Shown: in pieces, positions 105-61,215 of the stretch | Layout: every line of letters begins with the position of its first letter | Numbering within the stretch: position 1 is the stretch's first letter | Source of the DNA: Azolla caroliniana | Taxonomy: Eukaryota > Plantae > Polypodiophyta | DNA length: 64,000 nucleotides | Assembly: GCA_043228905.1 (NCBI GenBank) | Contig: JBHGNT010000009.1 | Coordinates: forward strand, 16,492,001 to 16,556,000 | Direction of reading: 5' to 3' | Made by a program: the position numbers and the translations under genes | Notes under the pieces: generated by a model | Seen by the model: the letters and a program-made list of their open reading frames with translations, nothing else | The model's database searches: none | What the model was told of the DNA's origin: nothing

Positions 105-593
105 TGTCATGAACATATACCAAAACTCCAAGACTTGTAATAAGGATTCGAACCCATGACCTTGTCAAAGATAATGTGTAACTTCAACCACTAGGATACA
201 TCATATTACATTTATTAAATTGTAAATTCTTATATTAGATCATGAAGAAATATATCTAATAGTGTGAAGCATTGCCACCGCATAGGCTAACGCATGATTA
301 CCAAGTGTCATGCTTGCATGAATGCCAAGTGGCATGCTTGCATGAATGACAAATGGCGAGCATGCGTGCCTATGAGGTGGCGAGCATGCACGTATCCAAA
401 GCATGCTATATAAACATATAGCGAACTATTGATGAACCATTCTGGTTCAACGCTAGTCTTCGGCGTACTCTTGTAAACCTTGTTCTCATTGCTAATACAT
501 GTTCAATATCTTATTTCTCTCTCATTCCTCTCTTATTTTCTATTTCTCATTCTTTTCTTCATGTTAAACTTGTCTTTGGCTACGGCCCTGACA
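105..593 (+). repeat. 5' LTR of element A
   Basis: Direct repeat of 11713-12225, which carries one extra 24-bp tandem unit (GCTTGCATGAATGCCAAGTGGCAT); TATA box at ~407. Confidence 0.95.
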
Positions 594-1168: not shown

Positions 1169-4093
1169 TGTCAAGATTCGAACTCTTGACACGACCATGT
1201 TATAATCTACTATTATGAGTTAACCAAGATATCTAGTACTAGTTATGTATATAATTGTTCCTTATTATTTTGCTAGCATCATGTGCATAGTTGCTCCCTT
1301 GTAGTATTTACACTTGGCACATGCATGCATACCTACATGCTCTATTGTAGATTCACATGCGTGCAACAAGTATGCATGCCATGTAGTATAAATAGAGGAG
1401 TTCACCTTGAAGGAATTCAAGGTGAACAACACCAGTTATGGAGTCTTTCCTTTAGTACTATATTCTTTCTTGTCCATCAAATTTTTCTGGGAGGCTAACC
1501 TTAGGCTCAAGAAACTGTGACGAAGCTAGGCTAGATGTTGGTAGAAGATCGGGCTCTAGGCTAGGTTGTTGTGGGAGACTAGGGTTCGGGGGTTGTGAGG
1601 ATAGGGAGGTACCGACTTGAAGTTCTTGTAAAGAATTTCGAAGATCAAGATATTCTCGGAAAATATCGTTCATCATATGTTGAAAAACTGCGGGAGCGTT
1701 AGTAAGACCAAAAGGCATTACCTTGTATTCGAAATGCCCATACCGTGTTCGAAATGCGGAGTCACCCCACAAAACCCTTCCAAGTCGAAACCGATGCCTC
1801 TTACTTTGCCATTGGCGCCATCTTATCCCAAGCAGACGACAACAACCTAATGCACCTAGTGGCTTACTATTCCCGAAAATTTACGGCATCTGAAATCAAT
1901 TATCCCATTTACGACAAGGAGCTTGTTGCTATCATTGCTGCCTTTGAAGAATGGCGACCCTACTTGGCCGGCGCACAACATCGTGTCCAGGTAGTGACTG
2001 ATCATAAAAATTTAGTTTATTTTTCCACCACTCGTACTTTGAATCGAAGGCAGACCCGTTGGTCTACATTTCTCGCCGACTACGATTTTGAGATCGTATT
2101 TCGACCTGGTGGCCAACATGGGAAGGCTGATGCCCTTTCTCGCCGAGCTGACCTTGCACTCCGCCCTGGGGATGCTGCTTATGCTCAACAATCTAGACGT
2201 TTGTTGAAACCCGACCATTGCATCTGTTTGCCACTTGTATGTTGCAGGATGATTCTTTACTCCAACAAATCACTGATGCATCCAAGACCGATGCGTTCGC
2301 CAACGAGATTCGAGATAGTTTGCAAAACCCCTCCAAGGCGACCAAAAGGAAGGATCTTGACACCTTCACCATACAAGAGGGTTTGTTGTTCCGAGATCAT
2401 CTCTTATACGTCCCAGAGGGCCCATGTCGCACCCGGGTGTTGCGGGAATGCCACGATGACCCACTTGCAGGTCATTTCGGGGTCGCGAAAACCCTCGAGC
2501 TAATCTCTCGGGGGTATTGGTGGCCACAACCATGGAAGCTGGTCAAAGAATACATAAAGAGTTGTGAGGTTTGTGCTCGCTCCAAAGCCATTCATCATCG
2601 GCCATACGGCTTACTACAGCCGCTTCCATGTCCTCGTCGTCCTTGGGCCTCTATCTCTATGGACCTGATAACTGATCTACCCTTGGTCAATAGCTATGAC
2701 TCGGTGTTGGTCGTTGTCGATCGGTTTACGAAGATGGCTCACTTCACTCCATGCTCCAAAACCATTTCCGGAGAAGGAATGGTGCATCTCCTACTCAACA
2801 ATGTAGTACGCTTGCATGGACTCCCCGATGATGTCATCTCGGATCGCGGACCCCAGTTTGTCTCTCACTTCTGGCAGCGCCTGCTACAAACTTTAGGCAT
2901 CTCTGTCAAGTTGTCCTCCGCTTATCACCCCCAAACTGACGGGCAAACGGAGCGTGTCAACCAAATCCTTGAGCAGTATCTTCGATGCTCGGTTAGTTAC
3001 CAACAAGATGATTGGGTCAACTTACTTTCGCTCGCGGAATTCGCCTACAATAATTCACTCCATGCATCGACTGGCGTCACTCCCTTCTTTGCCAACTACG
3101 GTTTACATCCTCGCTTCAACATTTCCCTTCCTACCACTTCCGTGAACCCTTCGGCGGAGGATCGTGCCCGCATTTTGGAAGAAGTACATCATGATTTATC
3201 CTTGGAGCTTAGTCTTGCTAATGAACGATACAAGAAGCAGGCTGATCGCCATCGATCTTCCACTCCACACTTTGTCGTTGGAGACATGGTCTGGTTGTTA
3301 CGTCGACACATCTCTACTACTCGTCCATGTGCGAAACTTGATTACAAGAAGTTGGGACCATTCCGTATCATCGAGTGCATCAATCCCGTCGCCTTCCGGC
3401 TCGCCCTTCCATCCCACTTCCGGATTCACGATGTTTTTCATGTCTCCCTCCTCGAACCCCATTATGCTTCACAACTCCCAGGACGTCAAGCCCCACCACC
3501 ACCACCTGTGCAATTGACGACAGGGGAGGAATACGAGGTCGACCAAATCCTTGACTCGCGTTGGCACCGTCGACACTTGCAATACCTCGTCCTATGGAGG
3601 GGTTACCCCATGTCTGAGGCCACATGGGAACCATCGGAAAATTTACAAAATGCCCCAGAGGTCGTCCAAGATTTTCATCACCGATATCCCCACAAACCAG
3701 CGGCCGATTTGGGAAGGCGGCGGCGTAAGAGGGGGGATAATGTCAAGATTCGAACTCTTGACACGACCATGTTATAATCTACTATTATGAGTTAACCAAG
3801 ATATCTAGTACTAGTTATGTATATAATTGTTCCTTATTATTTTGCTAGCATCATGTGCATAGTTGCTCCCTTGTAGTATTTACACTTGGCACATGCATGC
3901 ATACCTACATGCTCTATTGTAGATTCACATGCGTGCAACAAGTATGCATGCCATGTAGTATAAATAGAGGAGTTCACCTTGAAGGAATTCAAGGTGAACA
4001 ACACCAGTTATGGAGTCTTTCCTTTAGTACTATATTCTTTCTTGTCCATTTGGTTATCTTCTTCGTTGTCTCTTGAGTTTATGATCCGTGACA
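1169..4093 (+). mobile_element. Element B: internally deleted and inverted gypsy chromovirus nested in the gag of A
   Basis: 3' LTR 3741-4093; 5' LTR 1169-1477 (truncated, apparently identical over the shared 309 bp); TSD GCATG (1164-1168 / 4094-4098); PPT AAGAGGGGGGATAA. Confidence 0.93.
1766..3777 (+). pseudogene. pol: RNase H-integrase-chromodomain part of B pol (one frameshift near 2217)
   Basis: ETDAS...YDKEL...TDHKNL...ADALSR (RH); H-H-C-C zinc finger; SDRGPQF and QTDGQTER (IN); GPF; YEVDQILDSR..YLVLWRGY..TWEP (chromodomain). Confidence 0.92.
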
Positions 4094-7000
4094 GCATGAG
4101 AACAACTATTAATAAGATTTGAAGGTTGTGACAAGGGGATCGCCCAGCCTCAGCCTATGCGGTTGATTTTCGCCTTCTTGCATGTGACATTCCTTGGGAC
4201 GAAGAGGCATTGATGGACCAATTTCGTCACGGACTTCGTAATGATGTGAAAGGCTTGCTTCTCACTTTTCATGAAGATCCAAAATCTCTTACTGAGGCGA
4301 TTAGTCGAGCTATATGATGTGACAATCGATTATAGCGACGCTTTGAGCATCAACAATGGTCTCGACCTCGATCAGAGCAGACATATGCATCGGTAACATC
4401 ACTACCTACATCTGGAACTATGCATGTTCCTATATCTAGCCCAATAAGTGGTCCTACTCCAATGGAAATTGATTCTACATGTCGAGGAACTTTAACAGAA
4501 GCTGAAAAGCAGAGACGTCGGGCGAACCGCCTATGTTTATATTGTGGTGGTCCAGGACATATAGCGATAAGTTGTCCCCATTGACCTAGGCGTCAAGTTT
4601 ACCAAGTAAGTGCTAGTACTAAATTGGATCTCGATTCTCCAAATACATCTAGCAATCCTAATAGCCCTACATCTTCAAATCGTTTTGAAGTACTTAGCCA
4701 ACTAGATGAGGTGTTAAACGAGTAAATCCAGCCAAAATAGGAGCCATTTGGTTGGATAACCCATAATTTGTAGAGTCAGTCCATAGTAATGGTTCCATTT
4801 CATCGAACCAAGTTAATAGGGTTTTTGTCGCACATGTCGAGCTTAGTACCTCTAGATGTCATCAGGTCTTCGCATATGCTCTCTTAGATTCCGGAGCCAA
4901 CTCTTGTTTCATGGACCGGAATTTTGCCTTGACACATAATATCTTATTAAAACCATTGCATTGTCCAGTATCAGTCACAGTAATAGATGGTCGACCCATT
5001 GCCTCTGGAAATATAATTGAAGAGTCTGAATCAATTCGTGTAGTTCTTGGTGATTTAGCTTGTGTCATCTCATTCAATATCATACATAGTCCGGAGCATC
5101 TGATTGTCCTTGGTCTACCTTGGTTTGAGCTTCACAACCCCCAGATTGATTGGAGAAAACGAGTTATCCTAGAATCCAAGAAAAACCATATATCAGATTT
5201 CCCTATTACTTATAACCCAAATTTAGAATGCCATCAGATCTCAACAATATCTTTGGAAAACTTACGCAAAGAGGGAGACAAAGAAAAAATGTTTATATTT
5301 GCGATAATAACAATGCCAACACCAACTCAACAAAAGTCGAGTACCTTTCTTCCAACCAAGTATCAAGAATTCCAAGATGTCTTCAATAAAGACAAAGCTG
5401 ATAGACTCCCAAAACATCGACCTTATGATTGTCCTATTGATCTTCAGCCAGGAAAAGATCCACTGTGGGGACCCATTTATAGTTTATCACCTGTAGAGCT
5501 CAAGGTTCTTCGCGACTATATCGATGAAAATTTAGCTACTGGATTTATTCGTCATTCCAAGTCTCCTGCTGGCGCACCAATATTTTTTGTCAAGAAGAAA
5601 GATGGATCGCTTCGTTTGGTCGTAGATTATCGAGGATTAAACAAAATCACAATTCGAAACATAATACCAACACTTTTGGAGCGGTTGAGTGGAGCCAAAT
5701 ACTTTACAAAGATCGATCTTAGAGGTGCTTATAATCTAGTTCGAATTCGTCTGGGTGATGAATGGAAAATTGCATTTCGCACTCGATATGGGCATTTTGA
5801 GTATACAGTTATGCCATTCGGTCTTACAAATGCTCCTGCGGTTTTTCAGCATATGGCCAATGATATTTTCCGAGACTTCTTGGATATATTCACCATCATT
5901 TATTTGGATGATATCTTGATATTTTCCAAGACTCAAGAAGAGCATGATGAGCATGTACGCCAAGTTCTACAACGATTACAAGAATGTGGTCTCTATGCTA
6001 AACTCGAGAAGTGTAGTTTTGATCGCAACCAAGTGGAATTCCTAGGATACATAGTATCACTAGAAGGAATATCTTTGGATCCAGCAAAGGTGCAAACAAT
6101 TCTAGAGTGGGAAACACCACAATCTGTGCGTGATGTCCAGTGTTTCTTGGGATTTGCGAATTTTTATCGCAAATTCATCAGGAACTACTCAAAGAAGGTG
6201 TTGCCTCTTACACAATTAACACATAAAAACCAACCATTCATATGGAATTCTAGTGCTGCTGAGGCATTCGAAAGCCTAAAACATGCGTTCACATCAACTC
6301 CTATTTTGATCCATGTTGACCAAGACAAGCCTTTTATTTTGGAAGCTGATGCATCAGATTTTGCACTCGGAAGTGTCTTGTCACAACCCAAAGAAAATGG
6401 GCTATTATATCCAGTTGCTTTTCATTCACGAAAATTTGAAGCTACGGAAATTAATTATGAGATTCACGACAAGGAGCTTTTGGCTATTGTCGACTCTTTT
6501 GAGCATTGGCGCCACTTCTTGGAAGGTTCTCCCCATCAAATCATTGTCTATAATGATCACAAGAACCTAACGTATTTCCAGAATGCTCGAGTCTTAAAGC
6601 GTCGACAGGCACGTTGGGCACAATTTCTTGCACGCTTTGATTTCTTGATTGTGTATCGCCCCGCAATACACCAGGGAAAGGCAGATGCGCTATCTTGGCG
6701 TTCGTACATGGCACCCTGTTTAGGGGAACCTACTTTTGATCATCAAAAGCAAATCCTCCTTGGTCCTAATCGTTTACAAGTGATGGTCCCTAATGCTTTT
6801 AAGACACCTACGGACTCGATACTTATAAGTACGATTCGTACTGATCTTGAAGCAGATGAATTTGCCCAAGATGTCTTGAATCATATTATTCCAGATCGTG
6901 CTTCTTGTTCAAGGTCGATGAATTCTCGTAAAGATTATAATCAGTTCAGTTGGCATGATAATTTACTTTTTCGAAATAATTTGCTTTATGTCCCTGATGG

Positions 7001-8675
7001 CTGCTCTCAATTCCTTATTTTACAACATTGCCACGACATGCCAATGGCTGGACATTTTGGAGTTCACAAAACATTGGAATTAGTTTCTAGAAATTATTGG
7101 TGGCCACATCTTCGTAATTATGTTGAAAACTACATTCGTAGTTGTGATGCATGTTGTCGGTCCAAGTGTCCTCGACATCAACCATATGGTTTACTCCAAC
7201 CCTTACCAGTTCCTGATGGTCCTTGGAAGTCTATATCTATGGATTTCATTATTGATCTTCCATCTTCCAAAGGTTTTGATTCCATCCTGACTGTTGTAGA
7301 TCGGTTCACAAAGATGACACATTTTCTACCATGCACAAAGACGATTAATAGTCAAGAGAAAGCAGATTTGGTTATGCGTGAAGTGTTTTGGCATCATGGT
7401 CTTCCTGATGACATCATTAGTGATTAAGGACCACAATTTATCTCAACATTTTGGAAACATTTGTTTGGGCTCCTCCAAATTGATTATAAACTCTCGTCAA
7501 GCTATCACCTAGAGACTGATTCTCAAACCGAGCGTACCAATCAAACCGTGGAACAATACCTTTGTTGCTTCATCAATTATCAACAAGATGATTGGGTAGA
7601 TTATTTACATTTTGCAGAGTTTTCTTACAACAATTCAGTTCATCCTTCTACCAAAATTACTCCCTTCTTTGCCAACACGGGTGTTCATCCCCGTTGGACA
7701 ATTCTTGACCACCCAAGAATCTCGAAAAACCCCGCTGCGGAGGATCGCCAACGTCATATCCGAGAAATTCATATTGCTCTTTCTCATCATTTACATCACG
7801 CTGTCGTAGTGTATTTCGTACACTACGTGAAAAAGTAAAAAATAATATAACCGATTTAATTACATATAAATAAATAAAATAATATATCAAGATATTTATC
7901 ACGTGCATAGGGCAGGATTTGAACCCTGTACCTCCACGTAGCCAAACCTCAACTTTACCATTATGCTACCTTATCTTTAGTGTTTTATAAATAGATTTAA
8001 TAACTATAAGTGCTTTATTTGCGCCTACCTTTATTAAAAGGTAAATCATGTATTTTTAGAGTGCGTGAATATTTTATAGAAAAACGCAAGCGACTAAAAA
8101 GTGACTCATGCACATCTAGCGTGCATGAGCACTATATTTAGCAAATAAAAGCAAGGATTAGAAAAGCATCACATGCACATTTAGTGTGCATGAACATATT
8201 AGAAAAAAAAGCATGTAGCTATGCTTAGTCTCTCCCATCACTACATAAGGATGGGGAGCACAATGTAATAGGTGTGTGAAAAATATTTGGGAAATTGGAT
8301 ATATTTCCTAAAACACCAACAATCAATAAAATATACTCGTGGGATTCACGAAGTTTAAGATAATCTATCTCTTTCAATCTAAATTCATATTCTTACATAA
8401 ATATTGATTAATGTAATACTTGTGGGATTCACAAGGTTTGATCTCTTTTCTCAATCTACTCTAATCTATTCTAAATTATTTCAATTTATTACTACGATTT
8501 AGATAAACTAAAACAATTATACTTGTGGGATTCACAAGTTTCTATATCTCTTTCTTATAATCTATTCATATTCATAACTAGATTAGCCTCAAATTCTTCC
8601 TCCTCCTAGTCCAAAACCCCGGTGGTTCCCACCCGACTCACGCAAACGATCCGGAGCCGAAAGGCACGACACAGT

Positions 8676-8693
8676 TGGTGAACCCGACGTGAA
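8676..8693 (+). promoter_or_regulatory. Primer-binding site complementary to the 3' end of tRNA-Trp
   Basis: TGGTGAACCCGACGTGAA; its reverse complement TTCACGTCGGGTTCACCA matches the plant tRNA-Trp(CCA) 3' end as I recall it. Confidence 0.85.
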
Positions 8694-8709
8694 GGCGGGT
8701 GGCAAGGAG

Positions 8710-10362
8710 ATGGAGAATCAACAAGAGGCGATGAACATGATGATGATGATGTTCGAGAGAATGCTACAAGAACAACGCGAGATGTCGGAGATCACGACAG
8801 TAGTACAACGGCTCGTGCAACAGAACGGGCAATTCGATGGAAAGGACGTGTCACGCTATCTACGTGACTACAAAATGGAGATGTTGCGATATGGTATCTC
8901 AGAAAGATTGCAAGTGTTATCTTTCAACCGGGTGGCTACGGATGAGCTTCAAGAGAGAATCCACGAGATACGACAACAAAGCCCGATGTGGGAGTCCTTT
9001 GAAGAAGCTATACGAGACACATATGACTATCTAAGACCGAAGCGGACGAGGACATGGTCCACGAACGGCGGTCAACAGTGGGTGAAAAGCGGCCACCGAC
9101 TACCACCGAAGGAGAGCTTGATGCGGAAGGGTTCGGAGATGCATGAAAAGTCGCAAGTCGACATTGAAGGGGAGCTTAAAACCGAACCAAAGTCGAGGCC
9201 AACAAAGGACGAGGAGGAGGAAGATCGAGGACGAAAGGGTATCCCCACACCGGTTCCAGAGACTTCGGCGGCTGTGCCCGTGCACCAACGTGAGACCGGA
9301 GAGACGGAATGTGTCGGTGGAAAAGTGGAGGACTGGAAGGGCAACGAGGAAGACAAAGTAAATGAGCACGAACGAAGGGATTCCTTCACCATTGTTTCGG
9401 AGACTTCGATACTGGAGCCCGGGTGTCGACATAACACCGAAGATAAGGAAAGTGGCGGCAACGAAACGAAGGTCGAAGCCGATGCATACGAAGGAGAGAT
9501 AGCCAAGGAGAACATGGCTATGGGTGAAACAACGGAAGATGATAATACCGAGGATTCCTACCCACTAATTCTAGAGACTTCGGCGGTTGTGTCCGAGAAC
9601 CAACGTGAGACCGGAGAGACGGGAGGTGGCAACAAGGAAGGTAAAGTCGGAAGCCGGTTCGGATGGAAGATGATCCGTCTGAAATTCCGATGTAAACAAA
9701 AGCATGACAACGCGAAGGTCGGGTCTACGATGGGAGAAGCATGTAATACGGAGCACGCACTACGGCACCAAAAGAAGCACGTGCTACGGCGTAAAGAGAA
9801 GCACACGCTACGGCGCAAAAAGAAGCACGCGCTACGGTGCAAAAATAAGCATGCACTACGGGGTAATACGGCGCATGCACTACGATGGAATACGAAGCAT
9901 GCGCTACGGCCTAATACGACGCATGCGCAACATCGAGAAATAAAGCATGCATTAAAGCCGCACAAGGACCTAACAGCGAGCGCGTATTCGGAGGTCGACA
10001 TCGACGCGTGGGTAGAACCTACGGAAGACAAGCGCGGAGTGGAGAGAGACAACACACCGAGATGCTCAAGAGTACCACAAGGGACCATGACAACCACTCA
10101 TGGCAATGCAAAGAATGAACAAAGAATATGGTGGATCGGATGGCGACAATGGTTCGGGTGGAAAGAATGGGTCTACTCAAAATGGAGAGACAAAGTTGGC
10201 ATAGCGAGACAAACGGAGGATGAAGGGGAGACAACGAGCATCGGCAACTTCGGCACATACCGGAGGATGTGCGGGTTCGGAGGGGGCGAGTGTCGTAGTG
10301 TATTTCGTACACTACGTGAAAAAGTAAAAAATAATATAACCGATTTAATTACATATAAATAA
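8710..10362 (+). CDS. Intact ~550-aa Gag-like ORF of element C with acidic and basic/His repeat regions, running into the 3' LTR
   Basis: Uninterrupted ORF spanning the whole internal region; N-terminal FDGKDVSRYLRDYKMEM resembles a gag capsid start; 8-aa KHALR repeats. Confidence 0.75.
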   Translation: MENQQEAMNMMMMMFERMLQEQREMSEITTVVQRLVQQNGQFDGKDVSRYLRDYKMEMLRYGISERLQVLSFNRVATDELQERIHEIRQQSPMWESFEEAIRDTYDYLRPKRTRTWSTNGGQQWVKSGHRLPPKESLMRKGSEMHEKSQVDIEGELKTEPKSRPTKDEEEEDRGRKGIPTPVPETSAAVPVHQRETGETECVGGKVEDWKGNEEDKVNEHERRDSFTIVSETSILEPGCRHNTEDKESGGNETKVEADAYEGEIAKENMAMGETTEDDNTEDSYPLILETSAVVSENQRETGETGGGNKEGKVGSRFGWKMIRLKFRCKQKHDNAKVGSTMGEACNTEHALRHQKKHVLRRKEKHTLRRKKKHALRCKNKHALRGNTAHALRWNTKHALRPNTTHAQHREIKHALKPHKDLTASAYSEVDIDAWVEPTEDKRGVERDNTPRCSRVPQGTMTTTHGNAKNEQRIWWIGWRQWFGWKEWVYSKWRDKVGIARQTEDEGETTSIGNFGTYRRMCGFGGGECRSVFRTLREKVKNNITDLITYK

Positions 10363-12979
10363 ATAAAATAATATATCAAGATATTTATCACGTGCATAGG
10401 GCAGGATTTGAACCCTGTACCTCCACGTAGCCAAACCTCAACTTTACCATTACGCTACCTTATCGTTAGTGTTCTATAAATAGATTTAATAACTATAAGT
10501 GCTTTATTTGCGCCTACCTTTATTAAAAGGTAAATCATGTATTTTTAGAGTGCGTGAATATTTTATAGAAAAACGCAAGCGACTAAAAAGTGACTCATGC
10601 ACATCTAGCGTGCATGAGCACTATATTTAGCAAATAAAAGCAAGGATTAGAAAAGCATCACATGCACATTTAGTGTGCATGAACATATTAGAAAAAAAAG
10701 CATGTAGCTATGCTTAGTCTCTCCCATCATTACATAAGGATGGGGAGCACAATGTAATAGGTGTGTGAAAAATATTTGGGAAATTGGATATATTTCCTAA
10801 AACACCAACAATCAATAAAATATACTCGTGGGATTCACGAAGTTTAAGATAATCTATCTCTTTCAATCTAAATTCATATTCTTACATAAATATTGATTAA
10901 TGTAATACTTGTGGGATTCACAAGGTTTGATCTCTTTTCTCAATCTACTCTAATCTATTCTAAATTATTTCAATTTATTACTACGATTTAGATAAACTAA
11001 AACAATTATACTTGTGGGATTCACAAGTTTCTATATCTCTTTCTTATAATCTATTCATATTCATAACTAGATTAGCCTCAAATTCTTCCTCCTCCTAGTC
11101 CAAAACCCCGGTGGTTCCCACCCGACTCACGCAAACGATCCGGAGCCGAAAGGCACGACAACGCTCAAGCCACCCATAAGAAATTTGCAGATTGCCATCG
11201 ACTCAACTCATCGTCGGAAAAACCCAAATTTCAAGTTGGAGACCATGTATGGCTCTTACGACGTAATGTGAAGACCACTAGGCCTTGTAACAAGCTAGAT
11301 TATCAACGCCTTGGTCCATATTTAATCACTAAACAGATCAATGGAGTTGCTTTTCAACTCGATCTCCCTCCTCATATACGTCTTCACCTACTGTTCCATG
11401 TCTCACTCTTGGAACCTTATACTTCAAACTCTATTCCATATCGCATTGTTCCCCGTCCACCTTCTATTGAGCTTGATGAAGGCCCTGAATATGAAGTAAA
11501 ATCCATTTTGGACTCCAAAGTTGTGAAGAACAAATTGTATTACTTTGTTGATTGGCTGGGTTATACACCTACGGATCGAACGTGGGAGCCAGCTGAAAAT
11601 CTCAATAATACCAAAGAACTGGTAGCTGAATTTCATCAACGATATCCAAATAAGCCAACTCCTAGTTCATGCATTGCGACTCGTGGAACTCATCGTCAAA
11701 GGAAGGGGATAATGTCATGAACATATACCAAAACTCAAAGACTTGTAATAAGGATTCGAACCCATGACCTCGTCAAAGATAATGTGTAACTTCAACCACT
11801 AGGATACATCATATTACATTTATTAAAATGTAAATTCTTATATTAGATCATGAAGAAATATATCTAATAGTGTGAAGCGTTGCCACCGCATAGGCTAACG
11901 CATTATTACCAAGTGTCATGCTTGCATGAATGCCAAGTGGCATGCTTGCATGAATGCCAAGTGGCATGCTTGCATGAATGACAAATGGCGAGCATGCGTG
12001 CCTATGAGATGGCGAGCATGCATGTATCCAAAGCATGCTATATAAACATATAGCGAACTATTGATGAACCATTCCGGTTCAACGCCAGTCTTCGGCGTAC
12101 TCTTGTAACCCTTGTTCTCATTGGTAATACATGTTCAATATCGTATTTCTCTCTCATTCCTCTCTTATTTTCTATTTCTCATTCTTTTCTTCATGTTAAA
12201 CTTGTCTTTGGCTACGGCCCTGACAACTAGTCTCATTTTCTTGAACTTGATAGGAGGGAGATTACCCGATCTATGTTTAAGCCTCCTTGTACAGTCTCTT
12301 TATAATAATCCTTCCTAACTAATGGGAAAGTAGCTTCATTTTGGGAAGAAAAATAAAACTATTCATATATTGGTGGTATTGGAGGGTGTCTTTGCTAAAT
12401 GTGGGTTGTGTGAGGGTCATGTTGTGGGGATTCTGTCGAGTAATTCTGTGTTAAGGCTTTGTTGCTTCATCTATACATGTTTTCTTGTAGCCATGCAAAG
12501 TGGCTTGTAACATATGAGTTGTATATTATCCTATGTACTTTTTCTTAACTAATGGAAGTAGAATTTTTTTGGAAAAAATAAATAAAATAAAAAATAACAC
12601 TTAAAGCATTAGTGAGCTTCCAATGATTGTCCTAGTTGAGAAAATCTAGAAGAAGAAGCTATAAAAAGGGTAGAAGATGTTGTGTTGTGATGTGTGCGAA
12701 GTGACAAACTTGCGAAAAATGTAAGTTGCACAAAGGCTCAAGATTCTAGTAGAAATGGATATTAAGGACAAAATGAAACTGAAACAACAAAAAGCATGTC
12801 TCTAATGGTAAACCTAGCAATTAATAACAAAACTTCAAAGGGTTCAAAAACTTAATGATATTTTTATTATAAGAGGAAATATACCAGAGTCAAAACTAAA
12901 CGATTTGTTGAAGACATGCTTTGAATGACATGTTTATATACTAGTAGCATGTGCCTGTTGGATATTTGTAGGGTCATTA

Positions 12980-13860
12980 CACCCCTTGGAATATTGTAGA
13001 GTCATAATTGCTTTCAATATTTAGATTATACTCTAAGGTTCTCTATAACATGAATATTTTAATGGTTGAAGCTTTATGCCTTTTCAAGGAGGTCTTGCGT
13101 TCAACTCATCCCAAAGCTTATGGGCTTTTGTCTACTCATGTCACCCTCACCTCCTTTCACGATGAGTTCCATCGAGTCTTAATGCATGAATTAGGACTCG
13201 GCTTATCTACGTATTGGAAATGAAATTCAGTTACCAACTTTGAGGCACTTTCAAGGTTTTCATCAAGTTCCCAAGTTTCATCATCACGTGGATACCCTAA
13301 CCAATCCACAAGATAAAAAAACTTGTTACCAATACTCTAGGAGTCCAAAACAATGTTAAATTTGAATTCAGTGCCATTAACAAGTTCAATCGGAGGTGGG
13401 GCTGGAACAACCCGACACAGAATGGAACCAAAAACGTTTTGGTCCAACAATGAGGTGTGAATAATGGGTTCATATGTGGAGGAAGATCAAGGTGGAAGAT
13501 TACAAATGGACCAAGTCATTGATAATCATATTTATCACAAGGCTTAATGGTCTTCTTATTATATCGCAATAATCACACATGATCCCAACACAAAACTTTG
13601 GTTCCTTTGATGATTCAAGACAATGACAATATGTTGCCTTCTCACAAGCTCTAACAATAACTTTGATTATAGGGTCATGCCATGCCAACATTGTATCTTC
13701 CTGTTGTCTTATAACCTATACATAGTTGTGGTGGAGAGCTTCACTCCTAGACTCTTAAAGTACTTTCTAAAAGTCATTAACATTTATTTCTCCCTAGTAT
13801 GCCATTGTCTTCCCAACACACCCATACTTGCATATAACAACTTCTAGGAAGAACTTGTAT
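12980..13860 (-). mobile_element. Old degenerate chromovirus 3' fragment (IN C-terminus, chromodomain, PPT, LTR start)
   Basis: Minus-strand translation gives ..KPCDKYDYQ*LGPF..PPPIEL..YLVDWLGYPRDDETWE..; purine tract near 13141-13160. Confidence 0.75.
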
Positions 13861-15388: not shown

Positions 15389-18300
15389 TGAATAATGCCA
15401 TATGCCTCTATTTATAGTATTGTCAGGAATACTCCTGAAGTTTCTAGAATTTTCCAGCGTAATCTGGAATATACATGAATTTCCTATAGTGAAATAATAA
15501 ATGAAAATAATACATTTTATAATATAATGCATGGTTTAATGGTAAGTTTTCAACCCTTATAACACAAGGTCATGGGTTCGATTGCTTTTGGATGGAGCCA
15601 TACCATGCCATATCATGAAAGTATCCCCCCCTTTAAACGACGAGTGTTACGAGTCGTCTTTGATTGAGAACCTGGTTTGTCTGGATATTGGCAATGGAAG
15701 TCTTCAAGAAGAGCTTGAGCATTCGCCAAATTCATCATTGGATCCCAAGTACGCTCGCTTGGACTATATCCTAGCCAATTGACCAAATAATAGAGCTTGT
15801 TGTGAACCATCTTGGAATCGAGGATGACAGCAACCTCGCACTCAGGTCTATCTTCAAGTTCGATCGGGGGTGGAGGTGGTGTAATAAGATCTAGGATTGT
15901 GTTGTCCTGATAGGGTTCTAGAAGAGAACTATCAAATACCGGATGTATCCGTAGTTGCGGAGGTAGATCAAGGTGAAAACTGACATCATTAATTTTTCTG
16001 TTAATACGGAAAGGCCCTAACCGTCGATAATCCAGTTTGTCACACGGTCGAGTAGTCTTGATGTGCCGTCGTAATAGCCATACTCGATCTCCAATAACAA
16101 AACAAGATGGAAGCCGATGACGATCCACATAGTCCTTCTCTATTTGTTGGGTGCAATGTAGATGGATAGATAGCTCTGCCTGAATTCATCGTAGCCGCTC
16201 CGAATGATCCTCTACACTAGGAATTGAGGGTAACTCAGGAGTTTGTAACACACACCAACGAAGATGATAACCGGTATAAGCGTAGAATGGTGTAACCCTA
16301 GTAGAGGAGTGGATAGAATTATTATAAGCAAATTCAGCAAACTGTAGAATATCTGCCCAATCATCTTGTTGATAGCTTAGGAAACACCGAAGATACTATT
16401 CCAGTGTTTGATTGGTACGTTCTGCTTGTCCATTTTATTGGGGATGATAGTCAGAGGAGAGATTGCAAGTGACCTTGAGCATTTTGAAGAGATGCTTCCA
16501 AAATTTAGAGACGAAAAGAGGTCCATGATCACTGATGATACTGTCAGGAAGACCATGATGCCGAAATACTTCACGCATAACAATTCCTGCAGTTTCTTCA
16601 CTAGTGATTTCTTTAGTACAGGGCACGAAATGTGCCATCTTAGTATATCAATCTACCACTGTTAAGATCGCATTGAAGCCCTTCGAATCCGGAAGGTCTG
16701 CGATAAAATCTAGAGAAATAGATTGCCACGGTTTGCTTGGGATCGGTAATGGCTCCATCAAACCATATGGATGATGTCTAGGCATCTTCGCTCTGCAACA
16801 TGTATCACATGTCCAAACATAGTCTTCGACAAATCTTTACATATGGCGCCACCAAAATGATCATTGTACTAAATCCAACGTTTTAGTACTACCAAAATGC
16901 CTGGCTATGTATGTGTCATGACAATTTTGTACTGTGTCATGACAATTTTGTACTATTCGAAGGCGACAAGAACCATTGGGAACATACAAAAGTTTCTTAA
17001 AGAAGAGTAATCCATCATGACATTTGAATTGTCGATAATCCATACCTGGTTGTTATGACCGTGAACAAGATGCTCGAGAGGGATCGATTTTATCTAGAAT
17101 AGCTTGAGCAAAAACATTGCACATCTCGCAACGAGCGTGAAGTTTGCCACTCTAACATAGTTTGGACTTTAGGTGGATCCATAGATATGCCTTCCGAGGA
17201 GATGACATAGCCTAGAAATTCCACTTGGTTACAATCAAAACTACACTTTTCCAATTTTGCATAAAGACCATGTTCTCGTAGTCATCTTAGTACAAATAGT
17301 ACATGAGAATCATGCTCCTCCTGTGTCTTTGAATAAATGAGCAGATCATCCAAGTAGATGATCAAACAAATGTCCAAAAGATCTCGGAATATATAATTTT
17401 CCATGTGTTGGAAGACTGTTGGTGCATTGGTGAGGCCGAATGACATAACTGTATACTGAAAGTGCCCATATTGGGTGCGGAAAGTTGTTTTCCATTCGTC
17501 TCTCGGTCGAATCCGTACGAGGTTATATGTTCCTCGTAAGTCAATGTTTGTGAAAACTTTGCGCCATTAATCCTTTCTAAAAGACTCGAGATTAGGGGAA
17601 CCTATTCCTGATGGTGACCTTATCCAAGCCACGATAATTCACGACTAGACGAACTTAGCCATCTTTTTTCTTGAAGAAGAAAATAGGTGCGCCGGCTGGA
17701 GATTTCGAATGTCGAATGAACCCGTTTGCCAAATTTTCCTCTATGTAGGCTCGAAGAACTTCAATCTCGGTTTGTGACAAGTTGTACATCGATCCCCATG
17801 GTGGCTCTTTTCTTGGTTGTAAATCAATGGGACAATCATACGATCGATGGTGAGGAAGAGTACTAGCTTTTACCTTATCAAAAACGTCAGTGTAATGATG
17901 ATACTTCTTTGGAAGTTGAATTGTTGACTCCTCCTTAGCGGTGTTGGAAGGTTTCACTGATATTGCGAATACAAACATTGATTCCTTGCGTCATTCCTCC
18001 CGCAATTGATGTAACAAAATTGTTGAAATCTTATGAGTAGATCCTCGAGGTTGTCGATACCTGATTTCTCTTGTTCTCCAATCTATGTCCAGATTGTGTA
18101 ATTCAAACCATAGTAACCCCAAAACAATTGGATACTCTAGACTACTAATTATATTAAATGATACAACACATGCCAAATTATTTAGGACAACACTAATCGG
18201 CTCTAACTCTTCTACGATATTTCCGGAAGCAATGCGGCGACCATCAATGACTGCTACAGAAGCTGGGCAAGGGAGTTTTCTTAGGGATATCTATTGAGCT

Positions 18301-18886
18301 TGAGAAAAATTCTTATCCATGAAGCACGAGTTGGCTCCAGAATCTAGGAGTGCTAAGACATGTACTGGAGGGTTATTTTTAGTACTAATTGTTACTTGAG
18401 CTAGGAAGACATTGCTAACTTGCTTAGAGGGAATGGAACCACTAATGGGATGCACAGATCTAGGGTTGTCCAACCAAACGGCTCCTATTTTGGCTGGACT
18501 TAGTCGTTTAACTCTTCTTCTAGTTGACTAAGGATTTCAAATTTGTTTGATAGGCTTGGGCTATTAGGACTATCAGACATTCCCAATGAAATAGACTCAG
18601 GTTTAGTGTTATTAGTACTAGCAGCTATTTGATGTACCTATCTTCTTGGCCTATGAGGACAATTCACTACAATATGCCCCGGTCCACTGCAATAAAGACA
18701 TAGTCGATTTTCTTGGCGTCGTTGCTTTTCTTCTTCCGATAATGGTCCACGACGACGAGTGGTGTCGATTTCCATCGGTGTTGGAGTATTTGCTGGAAAC
18801 GAATTATATGACTCCTTTGCAAATGTTTTGCTACAACGGAGGCGTATGTGGGCTCCGACCTTGTTCTTGGCATTTGTAACTAACGT

Positions 18887-19803
18887 TGTCGTGCCTTTTG
18901 GCGCCATATCGTTGCGTGAGTCGGGTGGGAACCGCTGGGGTTTTGGACTAGGAAGAGGAGAGTTTTAAGGCTAATAAGAATATAAATATGTTGTAAGAAA
19001 GGGTTATAGCAAACTCGTGAATCCCACGAGTGTATTGTATTAGATTAATCAATATGAATATAAGAATATAAATTTGGGTTGAAAGAGAATGATATAGAAT
19101 CCTCGTGAATCCCACGAGTATAATTTATTAATTTGTGTTTTTTAGAATTTCCAAATATTTTTTCACACCTTTTACATTGTGCTCCCCATCCTTATGTAGT
19201 GATGAGGGAGTCTTAGTAATCCATGCTTTTTTTTTCTAACTATAGACTCCATGCTTTCCCTATAGATAGACTATATGCTTTATCTAAAGTGATCATGCTT
19301 TTTCTAACTTGTGCGATTTTTTTTTTATCGACTATAGCGTTCATGCACGCTAGATGTGCATGTGTAGCTTTTTCTTTTAGCATGCGTTTTTATTTTAACT
19401 AAAGTTTATCCTACGTGAACTTACCTTTCTATGTGGGACATCTACTTTTTAACACTAATGAAATGCTAGTGTAATGCTTTATCTAAAGTGATCATGCTTT
19501 TTCTAACTTGTGCGATTTATTTTTTATCGACTATAGCGTTCATACACGCTAGATGTGCATGCGTAGCTTTTTCTTTTAGCATGCGTTTTTCTTTTAACTA
19601 AAGTTTATCCTACGTGAACTTACCTTTCTATGTGGGACATGTACTTTTTAACACTAATGAAATGCTAGTGTAATGGTAAGGTTTCACATTATTAACATGG
19701 AGGTGCAAGGTTTGAATCTTGCCCTATGCATGTATTATTTATTTTGACATTTTCTTCTATTTCTTCATATTTACTAAAACGTTACTTTATAAGTTTTTCA
19801 CGT
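18887..19803 (-). mobile_element. LTR of a diverged relative of element C, with an internal ~199-bp tandem duplication
   Basis: Reverse complement of the C LTR end (CCCACCCGACTCACGCAA...GGCACGACA); duplication units start at ~19275 and ~19474. Confidence 0.88.
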
Positions 19804-20542: not shown

Positions 20543-21263
20543 AGAGAGAGAGATAATGATGACAACAAGAAGTATATTATATTATATGAAGAAAGATACA
20601 AGAACAGCTAGGAGGCCTAAGACTGGCGTTGAACCGAATTGGTTCTCAATAATGCCATGTGCCTCTTTTTATAGTGTGCTTAGGAGTATTCTTGACATTT
20701 CTAGAATGTTTCAGAGAAATCTAGAATATACATGGATTTCCTAGGTGAAATAATAAATGAAAATAATATTTTTTGTATTACAATATATAGCTTAATGGTA
20801 GGGTTTCAACCCATGTGATACAAGGTTATGGGTTCAAATCTTTCTAAAGCCATAACATGTTATATCATGACATTACACCCCCCCCCCCCCCCCCAAGATG
20901 ACAAGTGTTATGAGTCGAATTAGATTGAGGACTGCGTTTATCGGGATATTGTCGGTGCAGGTCCTCAAAAAGAGCTCGAGCATTTTCTACATTCTCGATT
21001 AGTTCCCAAGTATGCTCATTTGGACTATAGCCTAGCCAATCGACCAACTAGTACAGGTTGTTGCGAAAAATCTTGGAATCGAGGATGCTAGCAACTTTGA
21101 ACTCTAGTCCTAATTCAAGCTCGATCGGGGGTGGAGGTGGTGTAATACGATTCAGAATAGTGTTGTCTTGATAGGGTTCGAGGAGAGAACTATGAAAAAC
21201 TAGATGTATCCGTAGTTGCGAACAAGACGAAAAGTGACATCATTAATTTTTCCGATAATACGG

Positions 21264-29512: not shown

Positions 29513-29632
29513 AGCACAACCTAGTGGTAAGTTGTTGTGCTACTATTACTTATGTCTTGGGTTCGATTCTCAACTTACTCATATCCTCTGGTCATATTTG
29601 ACCTCCGAAGACGATAATATAATCTATCTATC
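29513..29632 (+). mobile_element. Putative tRNA-derived SINE with a LINE-derived 3' tail, inserted in (TC)n
   Basis: A-box-like CAACCTAGTGG at 29517-29527 and B box GGTTCGATTCT at 29560-29570; tail GGTCATATTTGACCTCCGAAGACGATAATATAATCTATCTA equals the LINE 3' end; TC repeats on both sides. Confidence 0.75.
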
Positions 29633-30003
29633 TCACTCTCTCTCGCTCTCTCGCTCTCTAATGATTCTCACACACTCTTTCCCTTTTTAGTACGAATCCT
29701 CATTCTTCTCCTCTATCTTTAATACTAATTCTCCTTGCCTCTAATATTATCCCTGACAGTTTGAACCGAATTGGTTCTCAATAATGCCATGTGCCTCTTT
29801 TTATAGTGTTCTTAGGACTATTCTTGACCTTTCTAGAATGTTCCAGAGAAATCTAGAATATACATGGATTTCCTAGGTGAAATCATAAATAAAAACAATT
29901 TTTTTATATTATAATGTATAGCTTAATGGTAGGGCTTCAATCCATGTGACACAAGGTTATGGGTTCAAATCCTTTTGAAGCCATACCATCCTATATCATC
30001 ACA

Positions 30004-34720: not shown

Positions 34721-35147
34721 AATCCAAATGTGGTAAATGGCACATGTTGCCCCTAAGAGTCATCGGACCTACATTCCACCTTCATCGTTGAGATGGCCTC
34801 GACCTTTGCCGAAGACGGTTTTCCACTAGGATCTACGACTATTCAAACATCGACTTCTCCCTAGAGAAGGTAAGTCACGCTTCTTCTAGCCTTCGTAGTT
34901 GGTGAGGATTGAACCTACAACCTCACATCAACAAAATGTCATGCTCAACCATTTTGATATGAGCATGCATTTGTATATAATAGTTTAGTATTCTATAGTC
35001 TAACATATAGTACATTTCAGAATCAGAATATTCTAGTCGTTAGTATATTCTAGAAATATTGTACAATATATTCTAGATGGGTATATTCTAAAGATATTTC
35101 TCGAGTATATTCTAGAGATATTCAATATCAAAACATGTATAAATAAT

Positions 35148-38100: not shown

Positions 38101-41100
38101 TCTGACGCTGACTAGACATTGACGGCCAGAAAAACAGACAACGCTGGAAAGACACGGCCAGATGCACCAGACATGGTCAACCGGATAGACACTATCGAAA
38201 CGGAACGAGGCAACCAAACAAGTTGGATTTCACAAGCACAGAGAAAGACGAATGGACGGGCCAACAGGACGCATACCGACTCAAGTGACACGACTGAAAA
38301 GCAACCGGAACGACGGCCAGACAGTGGCCGGAAGCTGGCCGGAATAGTCAAACAGTGGCTGGAGCAGCCGAAGCGGCCGGAGAAACGGACTGATGACCGG
38401 GAAGACGAAACGGATGCACGGCTGGAAGACAACGGACAGACATCCAGAGAGTGGCCGAAATGCATAGAAGCAGCCAAAGTGGTTGGACAACGGCGGAAGC
38501 ATAACTAGTGCAGCGCCTAGATAGGCAACCGAACAAGGACGGCTGGAGATGGAGCCAAAGACAAAGATAGAGATGCAGACACGGACGCAGACAGCCAACA
38601 TAGGCAATGGACATCGATGGCGATGGCGATGGCCAAATGGGCCAATAGAGACAACGACAACAACGGAGATATCCGGACAGTAGCCAAAGAATGGGGGAAG
38701 AGCAACTGGACAGGCCCGACAGACATAGAGACGGGAAATGAAAATGGCTAAACATATGAGCAAATAGCGAATGGCAGGACAAAAACAACAAGATGAATGG
38801 TTGGACCGGCTAGAATGATCGAATAATGGTCGAATAGAGGCGACCGAATGAACGGACGGACACATCCAGATGAACGGACAGACACATCTAGATGGACGGA
38901 GATAACTGGACTGACCGGACAACGAGAGGACAACTAATGGTCGAACGACGACCAAGCGCATAGATAGGGAAACCGGAAATATGTGGCCAAACAAGCATAA
39001 CACCCCGGAACGGAGGCAGCCAGACCAGACTAGATGGGACGGACAAACGAAGGACGTCGGATAATGACGAAAATGGAGACGACCGGATTGACGGCTAAAC
39101 AACAACCGGAATGGCCGACGAATGACAACGAATGCCAGTCGGACGTTGGCAACGGGAACGGACAGATGAAGGGTTGGCGACGATGACAGAAGACAAACAA
39201 TCAGATAGATAACCGACAAAGATTGACTGTGGCCGAATAGACAGCCAATTCAACAGCGGCCAAACCAACAACTGGAAGGCACAGAGACAGTCAGACAAGG
39301 GCGAAACAGTGGGGCGGAAAGCGGCCGAACAACGGAAATACGGCAGCCGGAGTGGCTACCGGATAGCAGAATGACGACAAAGATGGGCGGTGACGGCGAT
39401 GGCAACGACGAACAACAACAGTGACAAAGACGAACGAAGCAACAGAGATGGACGACAAACAAAATAGAGAAAACAGAAAGAAGAAAGAAGAAGAGAGAAG
39501 AGCAATGCAGAGAAGAAGAAGAATAAGAGTGTTAGGGTACAAGATGTATGAAGAGCAATGCGGTCGCCGGAGTGGCGACCGGATAACAGAATGATGACAA
39601 AGATGGACGGCGACGGCGATGGCAACGATGAACAACAACAGTGACAAAGACGGATGAAGCAACAGAGATGGACAACAAACAAAACAGAGAAAACAGAAAG
39701 AAGAAAGAAGAAGAGAGAAGAGCAATGCAGAGAAGAAGAAGAATAAGAGTGTTAGGGTATGAGATGTACGAAGAGCGAGGGTGGAATGTTATAATGTTGT
39801 TTATGTGTATGTGTAAATGTGTAAGTGTAATTGTGAGTGTGAGTAATTACGTATGTGTACACATGCACACATGTGTGTATGTGGACGGATACGAGGAGGT
39901 GTGAGTGAGCGATTGGTGTGAATGTCCGAGTATCCAACTAGACTTTCTGTCCATTTGTGAACAAGGTGGTGCCTACGTTGTTGGTGTCGAGGATGAACAT
40001 CCTCATGTTCCGGCGCCCTTGCGCGATGATCCGGCTCTCTTCCTCAATGAAGCACCCGAGATGCGTAAATCGCACCTACATTCCCTGGTCGATGATCTAC
40101 CCAACCAACAGCAGGTTCTTTGTGATTGTCGGCACGTGAAGCACATTGATTAGCTTCCCTTGTCCGACATGACTTAACAGAACTTCACCGACATGCACTA
40201 TCGGGTGAGGAGTGTCGTCTCTGGTTTCGACAACTACCGGTTGCTCCGGCGTTTCCAAAAACGTGAACCACTCTTCGTGGCTTGTCATGTGGTTAGATGC
40301 TCCGGAGTCAACGTACCATACTTCCTTTGATCCGATAGGGGTCTTCTTCATTATGTTCGCCTTTTGTTCATCACAAAGTTTGGCCCTTTTCTGGTCTTCC
40401 AGTTTCAGATACTTCTGATCCTTCGGCGTAGTGTGAACTTTGCCGGTTCCCTTGTCCAGCCTTATCGGATCTAGATTTATCCGAATCGGCGTGCTTCTTC
40501 TAGCACTCGCTCTCTCGGTGGCCCTTCTTGCAACAATACCAGAATTCCATTTCGTTCTTTCATTGCCGGTTTTCGGCGCCACTTTGACCCCCTTGCTTGT
40601 GGAGGGTTCAAAACTGTTGTCGGCACTATCTTTGTGCCTCTGGTTCTGCTCTTGCCGACCGCCTATATTGCGTGCCGACCCACCTCGTCCTCCACACCCA
40701 TGGGGCCGATCCGCCTCTATGTACAACATCTGGTTGTCTGATTAAGTGGCCCTTAACCCACTCACATGGTTTTCTTCTAACATGAGCATCGATTGCAGGT
40801 CGAAGAAGGACGATGGATTCTCCCAGGTGCAAATTGTCATCGGGATTGGCCCATACCGGTGTGCTAGACCATCGAGGCAGATCTGGACCATCTCGTCTTC
40901 ATCCACCATCACATTGATGGACCCGAGTGTGTCCTAGATCTCCTTGATCTTGGTGGTGTGGTTAGTGACCGACATGTCTTGTTGTTGAATATTGTTGAGC
41001 TCTCGCCGGAGCTACAACTTTCGAGCCGTGGTACTTGCTGAGAAAATCTTCCAGAGATTTTACCAAGCCTCCTTCGGTGACATTGCATCTCTGATGTAGC

Positions 41101-43232: not shown

Positions 43233-45228
43233 CAGAAAGTTTTTCTGTTGTAACTACCGGTTGGCGAAGATAGAGCTCGAGGTAGTTGCCTCTGAGCCTC
43301 ACATTGTTGTTGTACCTCTCCTCTATAGTGATCCTATTCGGAGTTCCAAGAACTCCTATGGTTTTTCCCGATTAGGGTTTTCCACGATAATATTATGTGT
43401 CGTCTTATTTCTGTTTTCTGTTTCTTCCATTGTGTGATCGGGACTCGATTGTGGCCGAGCACTATTTTTATCAATCTGGTATCAGAGCATGGAAGATCCA
43501 TTCGGCAGCATGTTCAAGCTCATCGGCTCCAACTACCCAGTGTGGAAGTCGAAGATGAGGGACATGTTGGTGGTCAAAGATCTCTGGATCCCGGTACAGT
43601 TTGGAGACAAAAGACCAGACAAGATCGATCCCACGACCTGGGAGGTAATGCACATGAAAACGACGGCATACATTCGATGCTTCATCGACATGAGCCTGTA
43701 CAATAACTTTAATGAAGAGAATAAGGTCAATGAGCTCTAGGAGAATATCAACACGATGTTGGAGAACAAGAATGCCGTAAACCGGGTTTCGATATTCCAA
43801 AAGATAGTGAGGCTCTAGTATCAAGACAACACCAGCATGGTAGAGCATATGAACACCTTCCAGGGGTTGATAAACTAGACTACCTCGCTCGAAGTACCGT
43901 TAGTCGACGATGTACTAGCACTATTATTGCTCGGATCCCTTCCGGATAGTTAGGAGACATTGGTTGTCACTCTAGGCAATGTTGGACCAGAAAGAAAGAA
44001 CTTATCCCTGGCGAGCGTGAAGTCAAGCCTGCTAAACGAAGAAGCTCTCTGGAAGGACTGAACCGATCCGAAGGCCTTGGTTACGGAAGACGACCATAAC
44101 CGGGGAAGGGGCCGGAATCGGAGTCCCTAGAACCGGGACAAATCAGGGACGAGGTTGAAGTCAAGGGGGAGGCCCACTTGCTTTTATTGCGGAAAGCCGG
44201 GGCACTTCCAGAAGAATTGCTGACACTTCCGAAAAGCAAAAGGGGGAACCGACAATCCGGAACCAAAGAAGATTTCAAAGAGAAGAGGAACGACGAAAAT
44301 CACAACAAGTGATGAAGAATTGTTGCTAATCATCGAGGAGAGTGAGCTACATCTTGTTGGCGACGAAACGACATGGGTGGTCGACTCTGGAGCGTCATTC
44401 CACCTGACCCCCGAACGAAAGTGCTTCTCATCCTACAGAGCTAGAGATCACGGTTGTGTCAGAATGGGAAATGAAGGTGCATGCCGAATAGTCGGCATAG
44501 GAGATGTGTGGTTGATGACATCAACCGGGTGCAGACTATTGTTGAAGGATGTCCGACACATTTCGGAGGTTTGGTTGAACTTGATATCATGCGGTTGGCT
44601 AGATGACAAAGGCTACACAGGTAGCATCCGGAACGGAGTAATGAAATTCAGCAAAGGAAGCTTGATCATGGCCCGAGCCCGGAAGATCAACACATTTTTC
44701 CTAATGCACGCCCGGATATGCCGGGAAGATGTCATGAGATGACAAGACTCGAACCCATGACCTTATGGTATATGGGTCGAGCTCTTAACCATCTCACCAT
44801 CTATTGTAATTCATAGAATATTATTTTCATTTATGTTTTATTATAAGAAAGTAATGTATATTCCAGATTTCTCTGGAACATTCTAGAAGCTTCAGGATTA
44901 TTCCTGAGAACACTATAAAAGAAGGCACTAAGCATTATGTTGAACCAAATTGGTTCAACACCAGTCTTAAGCCTCTTAGTCGATTTGTACTTATCTTTCA
45001 TATAATATAAGAGCTGCTGTCATCATCCTATTTTCTCTCTCTCTCTCCTCTTCTCACTTCCTCTCTCTCGGGAATCTTACGCAGTCCCGTCCTCTTAGTA
45101 CTAATAGTACTACTCTTCTTAGTACTAATTCCATCTCTGTTTTAGTACTATTCCTGACAGTTTGAACCAATTTTTTCCTCTAGCCTACTTGTCACTCTCC
45201 CTCATCCTCCTACCCTTTCCCCTATACT

Positions 45229-46386: not shown

Positions 46387-46454
46387 GTCCAGCCAAAATA
46401 GGAGCCATTTGGTTGGACAGCAGCCCTAGATCTGTACAGCCCATTAGTGGTTCC
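46374..46454 (+). promoter_or_regulatory. Putative -1 ribosomal frameshift signal (G_TTA_AAC, 6-nt spacer, pseudoknot)
   Basis: Conserved in A (4713-4796) and E (minus strand, ~18434-18514); stem GTCCAGCCAAA/TTTGGTTGGAC; loop GGAGCCA can pair with downstream TGGTTCC. Confidence 0.8.
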
Positions 46455-61019: not shown

Positions 61020-61181
61020 ATTTATATACAATATAGATACATACATACACACATGCATGTATTTGTGTGTGTGCGTGCGTGTGTGTGTATATATATATAT
61101 ATATACATGATACAAAATTCAAATACACAAACACATGGATTTATTTATATACAAATACAAATACAAGCACAAAATACAAAT

Positions 61182-61215
<34 letters not shown>

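Follow-up and report, generated by a model that had tools for sequence, protein, structure and literature searches.

A conserved antisense A box/B box cassette of tRNA type in the LTRs of one chromovirus clade, a putative TFIIIC site

Why should LTR after LTR in one stretch of Azolla caroliniana DNA carry the two boxes of a tRNA promoter, facing against the element in which they lie? In this study we focus on a window of 64,000 nucleotides (contig JBHGNT010000009.1, positions 16,492,001 to 16,556,000 of the forward strand; coordinates below count from its first letter). An earlier note, made from the letters alone, had listed instances of an A box, 32-33 nt and a B box near the start of U3 in gypsy LTRs, and had proposed that they are a selected module. 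We scanned both strands with generic patterns that are independent of those instances: TRGYNNARNGG, a gap of 28-39 nt, and GGTTCRANYC. Eleven matches with at most one mismatch were found in the window, and the gap is 32 or 33 nt in all of them, despite the wider range permitted. Dinucleotide shuffles of the window (n = 60) gave a mean of 0.15 matches and a maximum of 1, so that the motif is far above chance and the instances listed in the note, with their coordinates and description, are borne out (Table 1). Relaxing the scan to two mismatches adds the decayed copy at 13055-13107(+), called 'old' here, and a SINE-like head at 29517-29569. The same patterns found no cassette in 569 kb from 79 loci of more distant chromoviruses (37-57% pol identity).

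The copy at 144-198, read on the minus strand, corresponds to tRNA positions 8 to 62, with an A box, 33 nt, AGGT, four bases and a B box. As in a type-2 Pol III promoter, both boxes agree with their consensus and the spacing is tRNA-like. All cassette copies are antisense to their carrier element and lie 15-170 nt from the U3 edge inside the LTR; in 3' LTRs the cassette comes directly past the pol stop and the PPT. The constant place near the LTR start and the antisense direction were likewise as the note had described them, with orientation taken from pol or, for element C, from PBS/PPT. The copy in element B, which the note had called weaker, is weak indeed: it consists of a B-box hairpin at the LTR edge, with eight base pairs around a TTCGAAC loop, and the same arrangement is found in the relative L002. 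In these two elements (window 1169-1191 and 3741-3763; L002 about 4135-4170) the LTR begins with this perfect, T-loop-like hairpin, so that the terminal inverted repeat of the LTR is at the same time a stem like that of a T arm. The integrase-chromodomain ORF of B extends 36 nt into the 3' LTR (3741-3777), overlapping the relic.

Table 1. Cassettes and associated features in the 64-kb window and, in the last two lines, in relatives.
Feature	Position	Strand	Remarks
Cassette, 5' LTR of A (LTR 102-593)	144-198	-	B box 144-154, A box 188-198; 1 mismatch, gap 33
Cassette, 3' LTR of A (LTR 11710-12225)	11752-11806	-	After chromodomain end and PPT
Cassette, 5' LTR of non-autonomous C (LTR 7802-8671)	7915-7968	-	113 nt from LTR edge; 0 mismatches, gap 32
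Cassette, 3' LTR of C (LTR 10291-11160)	10404-10457	-	Found by generic scan
Decayed cassette 'old'	13055-13108	+	Adjoins decayed minus-strand chromovirus pol end 13181-13584; 2 mismatches, B box damaged
Cassette of E (minus-strand pol, 15634-18503)	15532-15585	+	TTTT immediately 3' of B box
Cassette, C-related minus-strand LTR	19666-19719	+	Critical B-box C56 changed to T
Cassette, 3' LTR of minus-strand F (LTR 20629-20872; pol end 20895-21262)	20788-20841	+	
Cassette, 5' LTR of F (LTR 29761-30003)	29918-29972	+	TTTT immediately 3' of B box
Cassette, orphan LTR fragment	34905-34959	-	One-base deletion in loop part of B box
Cassette, 5' LTR of intact chromovirus D (LTR 44730-45160, TSD GAAGA)	44745-44799	-	15 nt from LTR edge
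Cassette, 3' LTR of D (LTR 49967-50397)	49982-50036	-	15 nt past LTR start; PPT 49945-49964 precedes LTR
Weak B-type relic, 5' LTR of B (LTR 1169-1477)	1174-1235	-	Poor A box, gap 39
Weak B-type relic, 3' LTR of B (LTR 3741-4049)	3746-3807	-	As in 5' LTR
AT-rich stretch upstream of D A box (tRNA sense)	44800-44845	-	Candidate TFIIIB/TBP landing site
Complete pol of D (PR, RT, RNase H, integrase, SH3, chromodomain)	46383-49955	+	Fixes orientation; query for relatives
In-pol second cassette	L082:1073-1124	-	0 mismatches, gap 31, no AGGT
In-pol second cassette family	L001:1011-1069 and 6335-6386	-	Protease-RT linker

The carrier elements were delimited as LTR pairs by self-BLAST of the window, and oriented by pol (Pfam, tblastn) or, in the case of C, by PBS/PPT and leader. 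Elements A, B and D lie on the plus strand, and E, F and 'old' on the minus strand. D is a 5.7-kb element in which gag is complete and pol has a chromodomain at its end (Pfam), and a chromodomain is present in A as well. C, which is non-autonomous, measures 3.4 kb and has LTRs that are 99.5% identical; its 557-aa ORF at 8689-10362 (+) has no Pfam match. The copia LTR pair of the window is without cassette. The Atlas clusters nearest to D belong to Basidiomycota, and those nearest to the copia integrase of the same window to Streptophyta, a mixture that is expected for the Tcn1-like chromoviruses of non-seed plants (PMC2864245). In that work, SM-Tcn1 is described with LTRs about 440 bp long and a leader rich in T, and without a PBS recognisable as a tRNA type. 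Judged by their domains and by this description, with a tree that holds no reference Tcn1 sequence, the carriers are Tcn1-like chromoviruses. A rust-fungus host, considered because of the Basidiomycota neighbours and of 'leaf metagenome' contigs, was dropped, since the copia integrase matched Streptophyta and PMC2864245 explains the fungal affinity.

Some further observations concern the surroundings of D. The D family is hugely abundant in assembled contigs of the sequenced organisms coded A, B and E, these contigs being essentially DNA and carrying no strand or end information. Contigs of three runs join the flanks of D without D (44729/50408), with four extra letters at the joint, and the flank is itself a repeat, some copies of which are without D. 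Elsewhere in the window, TG/TA-rich microsatellites at 61000-61410 and 39800-39890 gave sub-threshold Rfam matches to mir-297 and mir-3149, which are low-complexity artefacts.

Relatives of the D pol were fetched as 80 loci from metagenome contigs and 11 contigs that encode the closest proteins. The antisense cassette is present in all seven of the closest relatives, which come from independent assemblies, at 17-50 nt past the pol stop (L001, L081, L082, L083, L084, L085 and L088; pol 67-74% identical to D). L084 is a member of the A family, and L085 and L086 are two contigs of one element. Together with A and D of the window, these seven make nine autonomous carriers, which form one clade (SH-aLRT 100) in two maximum-likelihood trees obtained by quick search, with support from SH-aLRT alone. 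In every clade member examined there is a single cassette, and its place is homologous. The sister group consists of L087, with two B-box-only copies, and L089, with none, while B and L002, with the B-box-only hairpin, fall in a neighbouring clade that also includes L012, where no such relic is present. The cassette was not found in L089 or L091; the contig of L090 stops at the pol stop and is uninformative on this point. The two copies in L087 (L087:4690-4750) are tandem, antisense and B-box-like, of the AGTTCGAATCTC type, 45 and 80 nt into the LTR, and the contig stops short of a possible A-box position. In L003, a cassette-free relative, about four tandem 45-bp repeats (L003:2880-3060) occupy the LTR start, where carriers have the cassette.

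On these trees, the spread of the LTR cassette is accounted for by one ancestral acquisition followed by retention. Its fixed position and orientation come from inheritance from one ancestor and not from repeated independent co-option; a single clade is one evolutionary experiment, so that position and orientation carry no independent statistical weight. The note's statement that the module occurs in several different families, chromovirus and non-chromovirus, thus fails, as A has a chromodomain and the nine autonomous carriers are one clade. The pol ORF of one family contains another antisense tRNA-like cassette, distinct from that of the LTR, in the hypervariable linker between protease and RT; it is read through in frame and adds roughly 20 residues relative to D. 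Its presence suggests that antisense tRNA fragments came into these elements on more than one occasion.

How much of the LTR cassette is under constraint was measured on 13 non-redundant families anchored on the boxes, as mean pairwise identity by region. Identity is 0.37 in the 45 nt upstream of the A box, 0.69 in the A box, 0.55 in the six bases after it and 0.31-0.34 between the boxes; it reaches 1.00 in the AGGT at tRNA positions 44-47 (invariant in 13/13 families), drops to 0.40 at positions 48-51, rises to 0.73 in the B box and is 0.295 in the 39 nt downstream. Outside the boxes the LTRs are saturated, with pairwise identities of 0.30-0.37 over the 13 families. The earlier reading, in which boxes and spacing are kept and the sequence between them is divergent, agrees with these values, and the column-by-column comparison with flanking U3 points the same way: at least 12 of the 13 families are identical in 15 of 27 box columns vs 0 of 111 others. 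Part of the conservation of the box columns is due to ascertainment, the box pattern having served to find the copies. Among columns outside the search pattern, 6 of 11 are near invariant vs 0 of 111 (p = 1e-7), the columns free of ascertainment being AGGT and the D-loop T only. The near-invariant positions are T8, A14, G18, G19, G53, T54, T55, C56 and A58, and the conserved set as a whole comprises T8, A14, the D-loop GG, 44-47 and 52-61. The 45 nt upstream of the A box, poorly conserved in sequence, have a mean AT content of 80% vs 61-63% beside them in the 13 families.

Since conservation is confined to the boxes and their spacing, the intervening sequence having diverged, selection would act at the level of the element. 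The view of the cassette as a tRNA-derived and heritable part of the LTR, already present in the earlier note, is supported by this pattern, which implies such selection. In the dead copies ('old', the C-relative with C56T, and the orphan) the damage falls on critical B-box bases, which fits selection acting through transposition. A neutral tRNA or SINE fragment whose decay is incomplete appears very improbable: a single origin would suit it, as would the tRNA-like pieces elsewhere in these elements, but the surroundings are saturated and yet 15 box columns are nearly invariant at pol identities down to about 69%. More can be said for ordinary Pol II factor sites or another sense-strand signal, with the likeness to tRNA boxes being a matter of ancestry only, as the place of the cassette in U3 is one where enhancers are found, and the TATA box follows about 100-150 nt downstream. 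The constrained set, however, is exactly that of TFIIIC, including 44-47 and the fixed gap of 32-33 nt, and an unrelated factor is not expected to keep tRNA spacing over 13 families; we consider this explanation fairly unlikely.

ARAGORN found 0 tRNA genes in the window, and the Rfam tRNA model gave no match at the gathering score, nor at E up to 10 on short stretches. When ARAGORN was relaxed, C came up at no setting stricter than -ps85, and 'old' and F at none stricter than -ps80; the latter setting gave 36 calls, most of them false, and was uninformative. The cassettes are therefore box relics and not tRNA genes, and a functional tRNA gene was rejected as a candidate, no cloverleaf being found and the T and acceptor stems being unpaired. 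A conserved tRNA fold was rejected too: outer T-stem pairs number 21/39, which is chance level (0.40 expected), and no acceptor complement was seen beside the boxes. The same holds for a conserved Pol III terminator, which was not found, the position of the first TTTT scattering between families from +2 to beyond +600. A tRNA-derived SINE also has A and B boxes and decayed stems, as in the one such head at 29517-29569, but consists of head, body, tail and target-site duplications, whereas the cassette has no body, tail or duplication, and this candidate was ruled out. The cassette comprises positions 8-62 only, is identical in both LTRs of an element, and is passed on as a component of the LTR.

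The lack of a conserved terminator and of tRNA stems argues against a defined RNA product and for a role at the DNA level. A short antisense Pol III RNA with a function of its own, for instance in copy-number control or in pairing with the PPT/U3 junction of the genomic RNA, would account for the presence of both boxes at exact spacing with an AT-rich upstream region; these are the needs of a transcribed type-2 gene and exceed those of a B-box-only TFIIIC site. Moreover, TTTT stands immediately 3' of the B box in E and in the 5' LTR copy of F. Such an RNA would nevertheless have no conserved length or 3' end over the families, no conserved sequence downstream of the B box and no tRNA-like fold, which makes it unlikely.

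Complementarity to tRNA offers another way in which the boxes could be useful, as an antisense A box and B box are by definition complementary to the D loop and the T loop. A precedent exists in the bipartite PBS of Ty3, in which U3 sequence of a Ty3/gypsy element pairs with the T and D arms of tRNAiMet (PMC5371799), and U3 of the carriers might in the same way dock a cellular tRNA through its D and T arms and so bridge the RNA ends in reverse transcription. Ty3, however, is primed by tRNAiMet and its segments match that one tRNA, whereas the carriers are self-primed and share universal tRNA positions only. Their PBS, directly 3' of the 5' LTR at window 45161-45175 (D) and 594-607 (A), consists of GTTTGAACC followed by 4-5 nt, and its complement lies in R of the same element (about 44938-44961 in D, 445-470 in A). 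Differences between A and D in PBS and R compensate each other, this PBS is conserved in L081, L084, L086, L087 and L088, and no TGG complement of a tRNA end is present in these PBSs. A PBS that pairs with its own R, and changes in step with it, points to self-priming in the manner of Tf1. In R, the arm that resembles the PBS forms a hairpin with the primer. Furthermore, positions 49-51 and 63-65 vary freely, so that pairing with any particular tRNA would not reach beyond the universal bases of the loops, and these bases carry modifications in the mature molecule. A docking role of the Ty3 kind is thus quite improbable. Pairing of the cassette with the self-primer was also considered, their GAACC cores being alike, and was rejected, as B-box position 57 varies without change, and hence without covariation, in the primer.

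We therefore return to the DNA itself and to the proteins that read tRNA promoters. Position 47, which lies upstream of the B box, is the site of a base contact with tauB in the structure of yeast TFIIIC on tDNA, and both TFIIIC binding and transcription respond to changes at +44 to +47 (PMC11724288). These contacts would account for the otherwise odd invariance of AGGT. As far as contact data from yeast and human, not plants, can be carried over, the conservation pattern matches the published TFIIIC contacts with DNA rather than an RNA fold. The conserved set is what TFIIIC reads on DNA, and we read the cassette as a putative, outward-facing assembly site for TFIIIC, TFIIIB and Pol III. It would be the internal control region of a tRNA gene that an ancestral Tcn1-like chromovirus acquired a single time, in antisense, at the edge of its U3, and that element-level selection has kept; as judged from sequence comparison, this DNA-level TFIIIC/Pol III cassette is the best reading and one that we hold with slightly better than even confidence. 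It suggests that the carrier elements may recruit the host Pol III factor TFIIIC for their own benefit.

The cassette would then work as DNA. TFIIIC would bind with tauB on 44-62 and tauA on the A box, and would position TFIIIB and Pol III so that they point outwards from the element. The benefit that we infer starts from the chromodomain, which would direct integration into heterochromatin. There the complex could hold the outer U3 edge open or, alternatively, could keep heterochromatin from spreading as far as the Pol II promoter, which lies about 100-150 nt deeper in the element; with the boxes facing outwards, this promoter would be spared from Pol III run-in. A role as a chromatin barrier or in promoter opening may thus be envisaged. 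Budding-yeast tRNA genes can silence neighbouring Pol II promoters, an effect that would harm the element here. To our knowledge, plants have so far given no case of a TFIIIC site with barrier activity. In yeasts, the barrier function of tRNA genes and of B boxes is established (e.g. PMC2040200, PMC4502379). The fuller proposal, that an autonomous clade carries and propagates its own TFIIIC-dependent boundary, which would shield the Pol II promoter after chromodomain-guided insertion into heterochromatin, is tentative and, in our opinion, rather doubtful. If true, this would make the cassette the first known insulator that a transposable element encodes to serve itself, and would give plants their first evidence of tDNA-type barriers.

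The tDNA and B-box barriers and the ETC sites of budding and fission yeast resemble the proposed mode in being TFIIIC-bound DNA elements that are independent of a useful RNA. They are host loci, and ETC and fission-yeast B-box sites are usually without an A box, whereas the cassette is borne by an LTR. We know of nothing comparable that is carried and propagated by a retrotransposon, and of none shown in plants.

Among LTR elements, the nearest likeness is with Helenus/TRIMp3, in which a tRNA-derived sequence with conserved A and B boxes lies in both LTRs, as here (Kojima 2024, PMC10886601). Helenus has one plant example, in Selaginella, and 'not a few' Repbase LTRs hold tRNA-like parts (PMC10886601). 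These elements are non-autonomous TRIMs of 311-1263 bp, in contrast to carriers that are autonomous chromoviruses of 5-6 kb with a Pol II TATA promoter; neither D, with its full gag and pol, nor C comes under the TRIM size of about 1.3 kb. The tRNA-like part of Helenus is in sense and near complete, and the Helenus-1_SMo LTR has a nearly complete sense tRNA with acceptor arms, whereas the cassette is antisense and reduced to positions 8-62, its stems lost. The tRNA-like part of Helenus is proposed to drive the element's own transcript (PMC10886601). According to the summary in the same paper, the Cassandra TRIM has a 5S rRNA-derived Pol III promoter in plant LTRs. Cassandra is similar in that an internal Pol III promoter lies within the LTRs of a plant retrotransposon; it differs as its promoter is of type 1 (5S), in sense, in a non-autonomous element, and drives its own RNA, while the cassette is of type 2 and antisense, in autonomous carriers.

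A search of the literature for an antisense, box-only tRNA cassette in autonomous LTR elements or chromoviruses found nothing beyond Helenus. The earlier note had not recognised the module as a described LTR feature. This stands for the antisense form in autonomous elements, and has to be given up for tRNA-derived boxes in LTRs as such, which Helenus/TRIMp3 already has. What is new, as far as this search goes, is the antisense form reduced to its boxes and borne by autonomous chromoviruses; that LTRs can carry Pol III promoters was known before.

The recurrence of the cassette over what look like separate families is a matter of common descent and not of convergence, which corrects a tempting over-reading. 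As LTRs evolve fast, a 55-nt cassette that stays constant across a chromovirus clade marks a host factor on which the elements depend. If this factor is TFIIIC, the cassette would explain many spurious tRNA-like and SINE-like matches in the genomes of non-seed plants, would provide a natural test bed for the barrier function of plant tDNAs, and would tie the survival in heterochromatin of retrotransposons driven by Pol II to the Pol III machinery.
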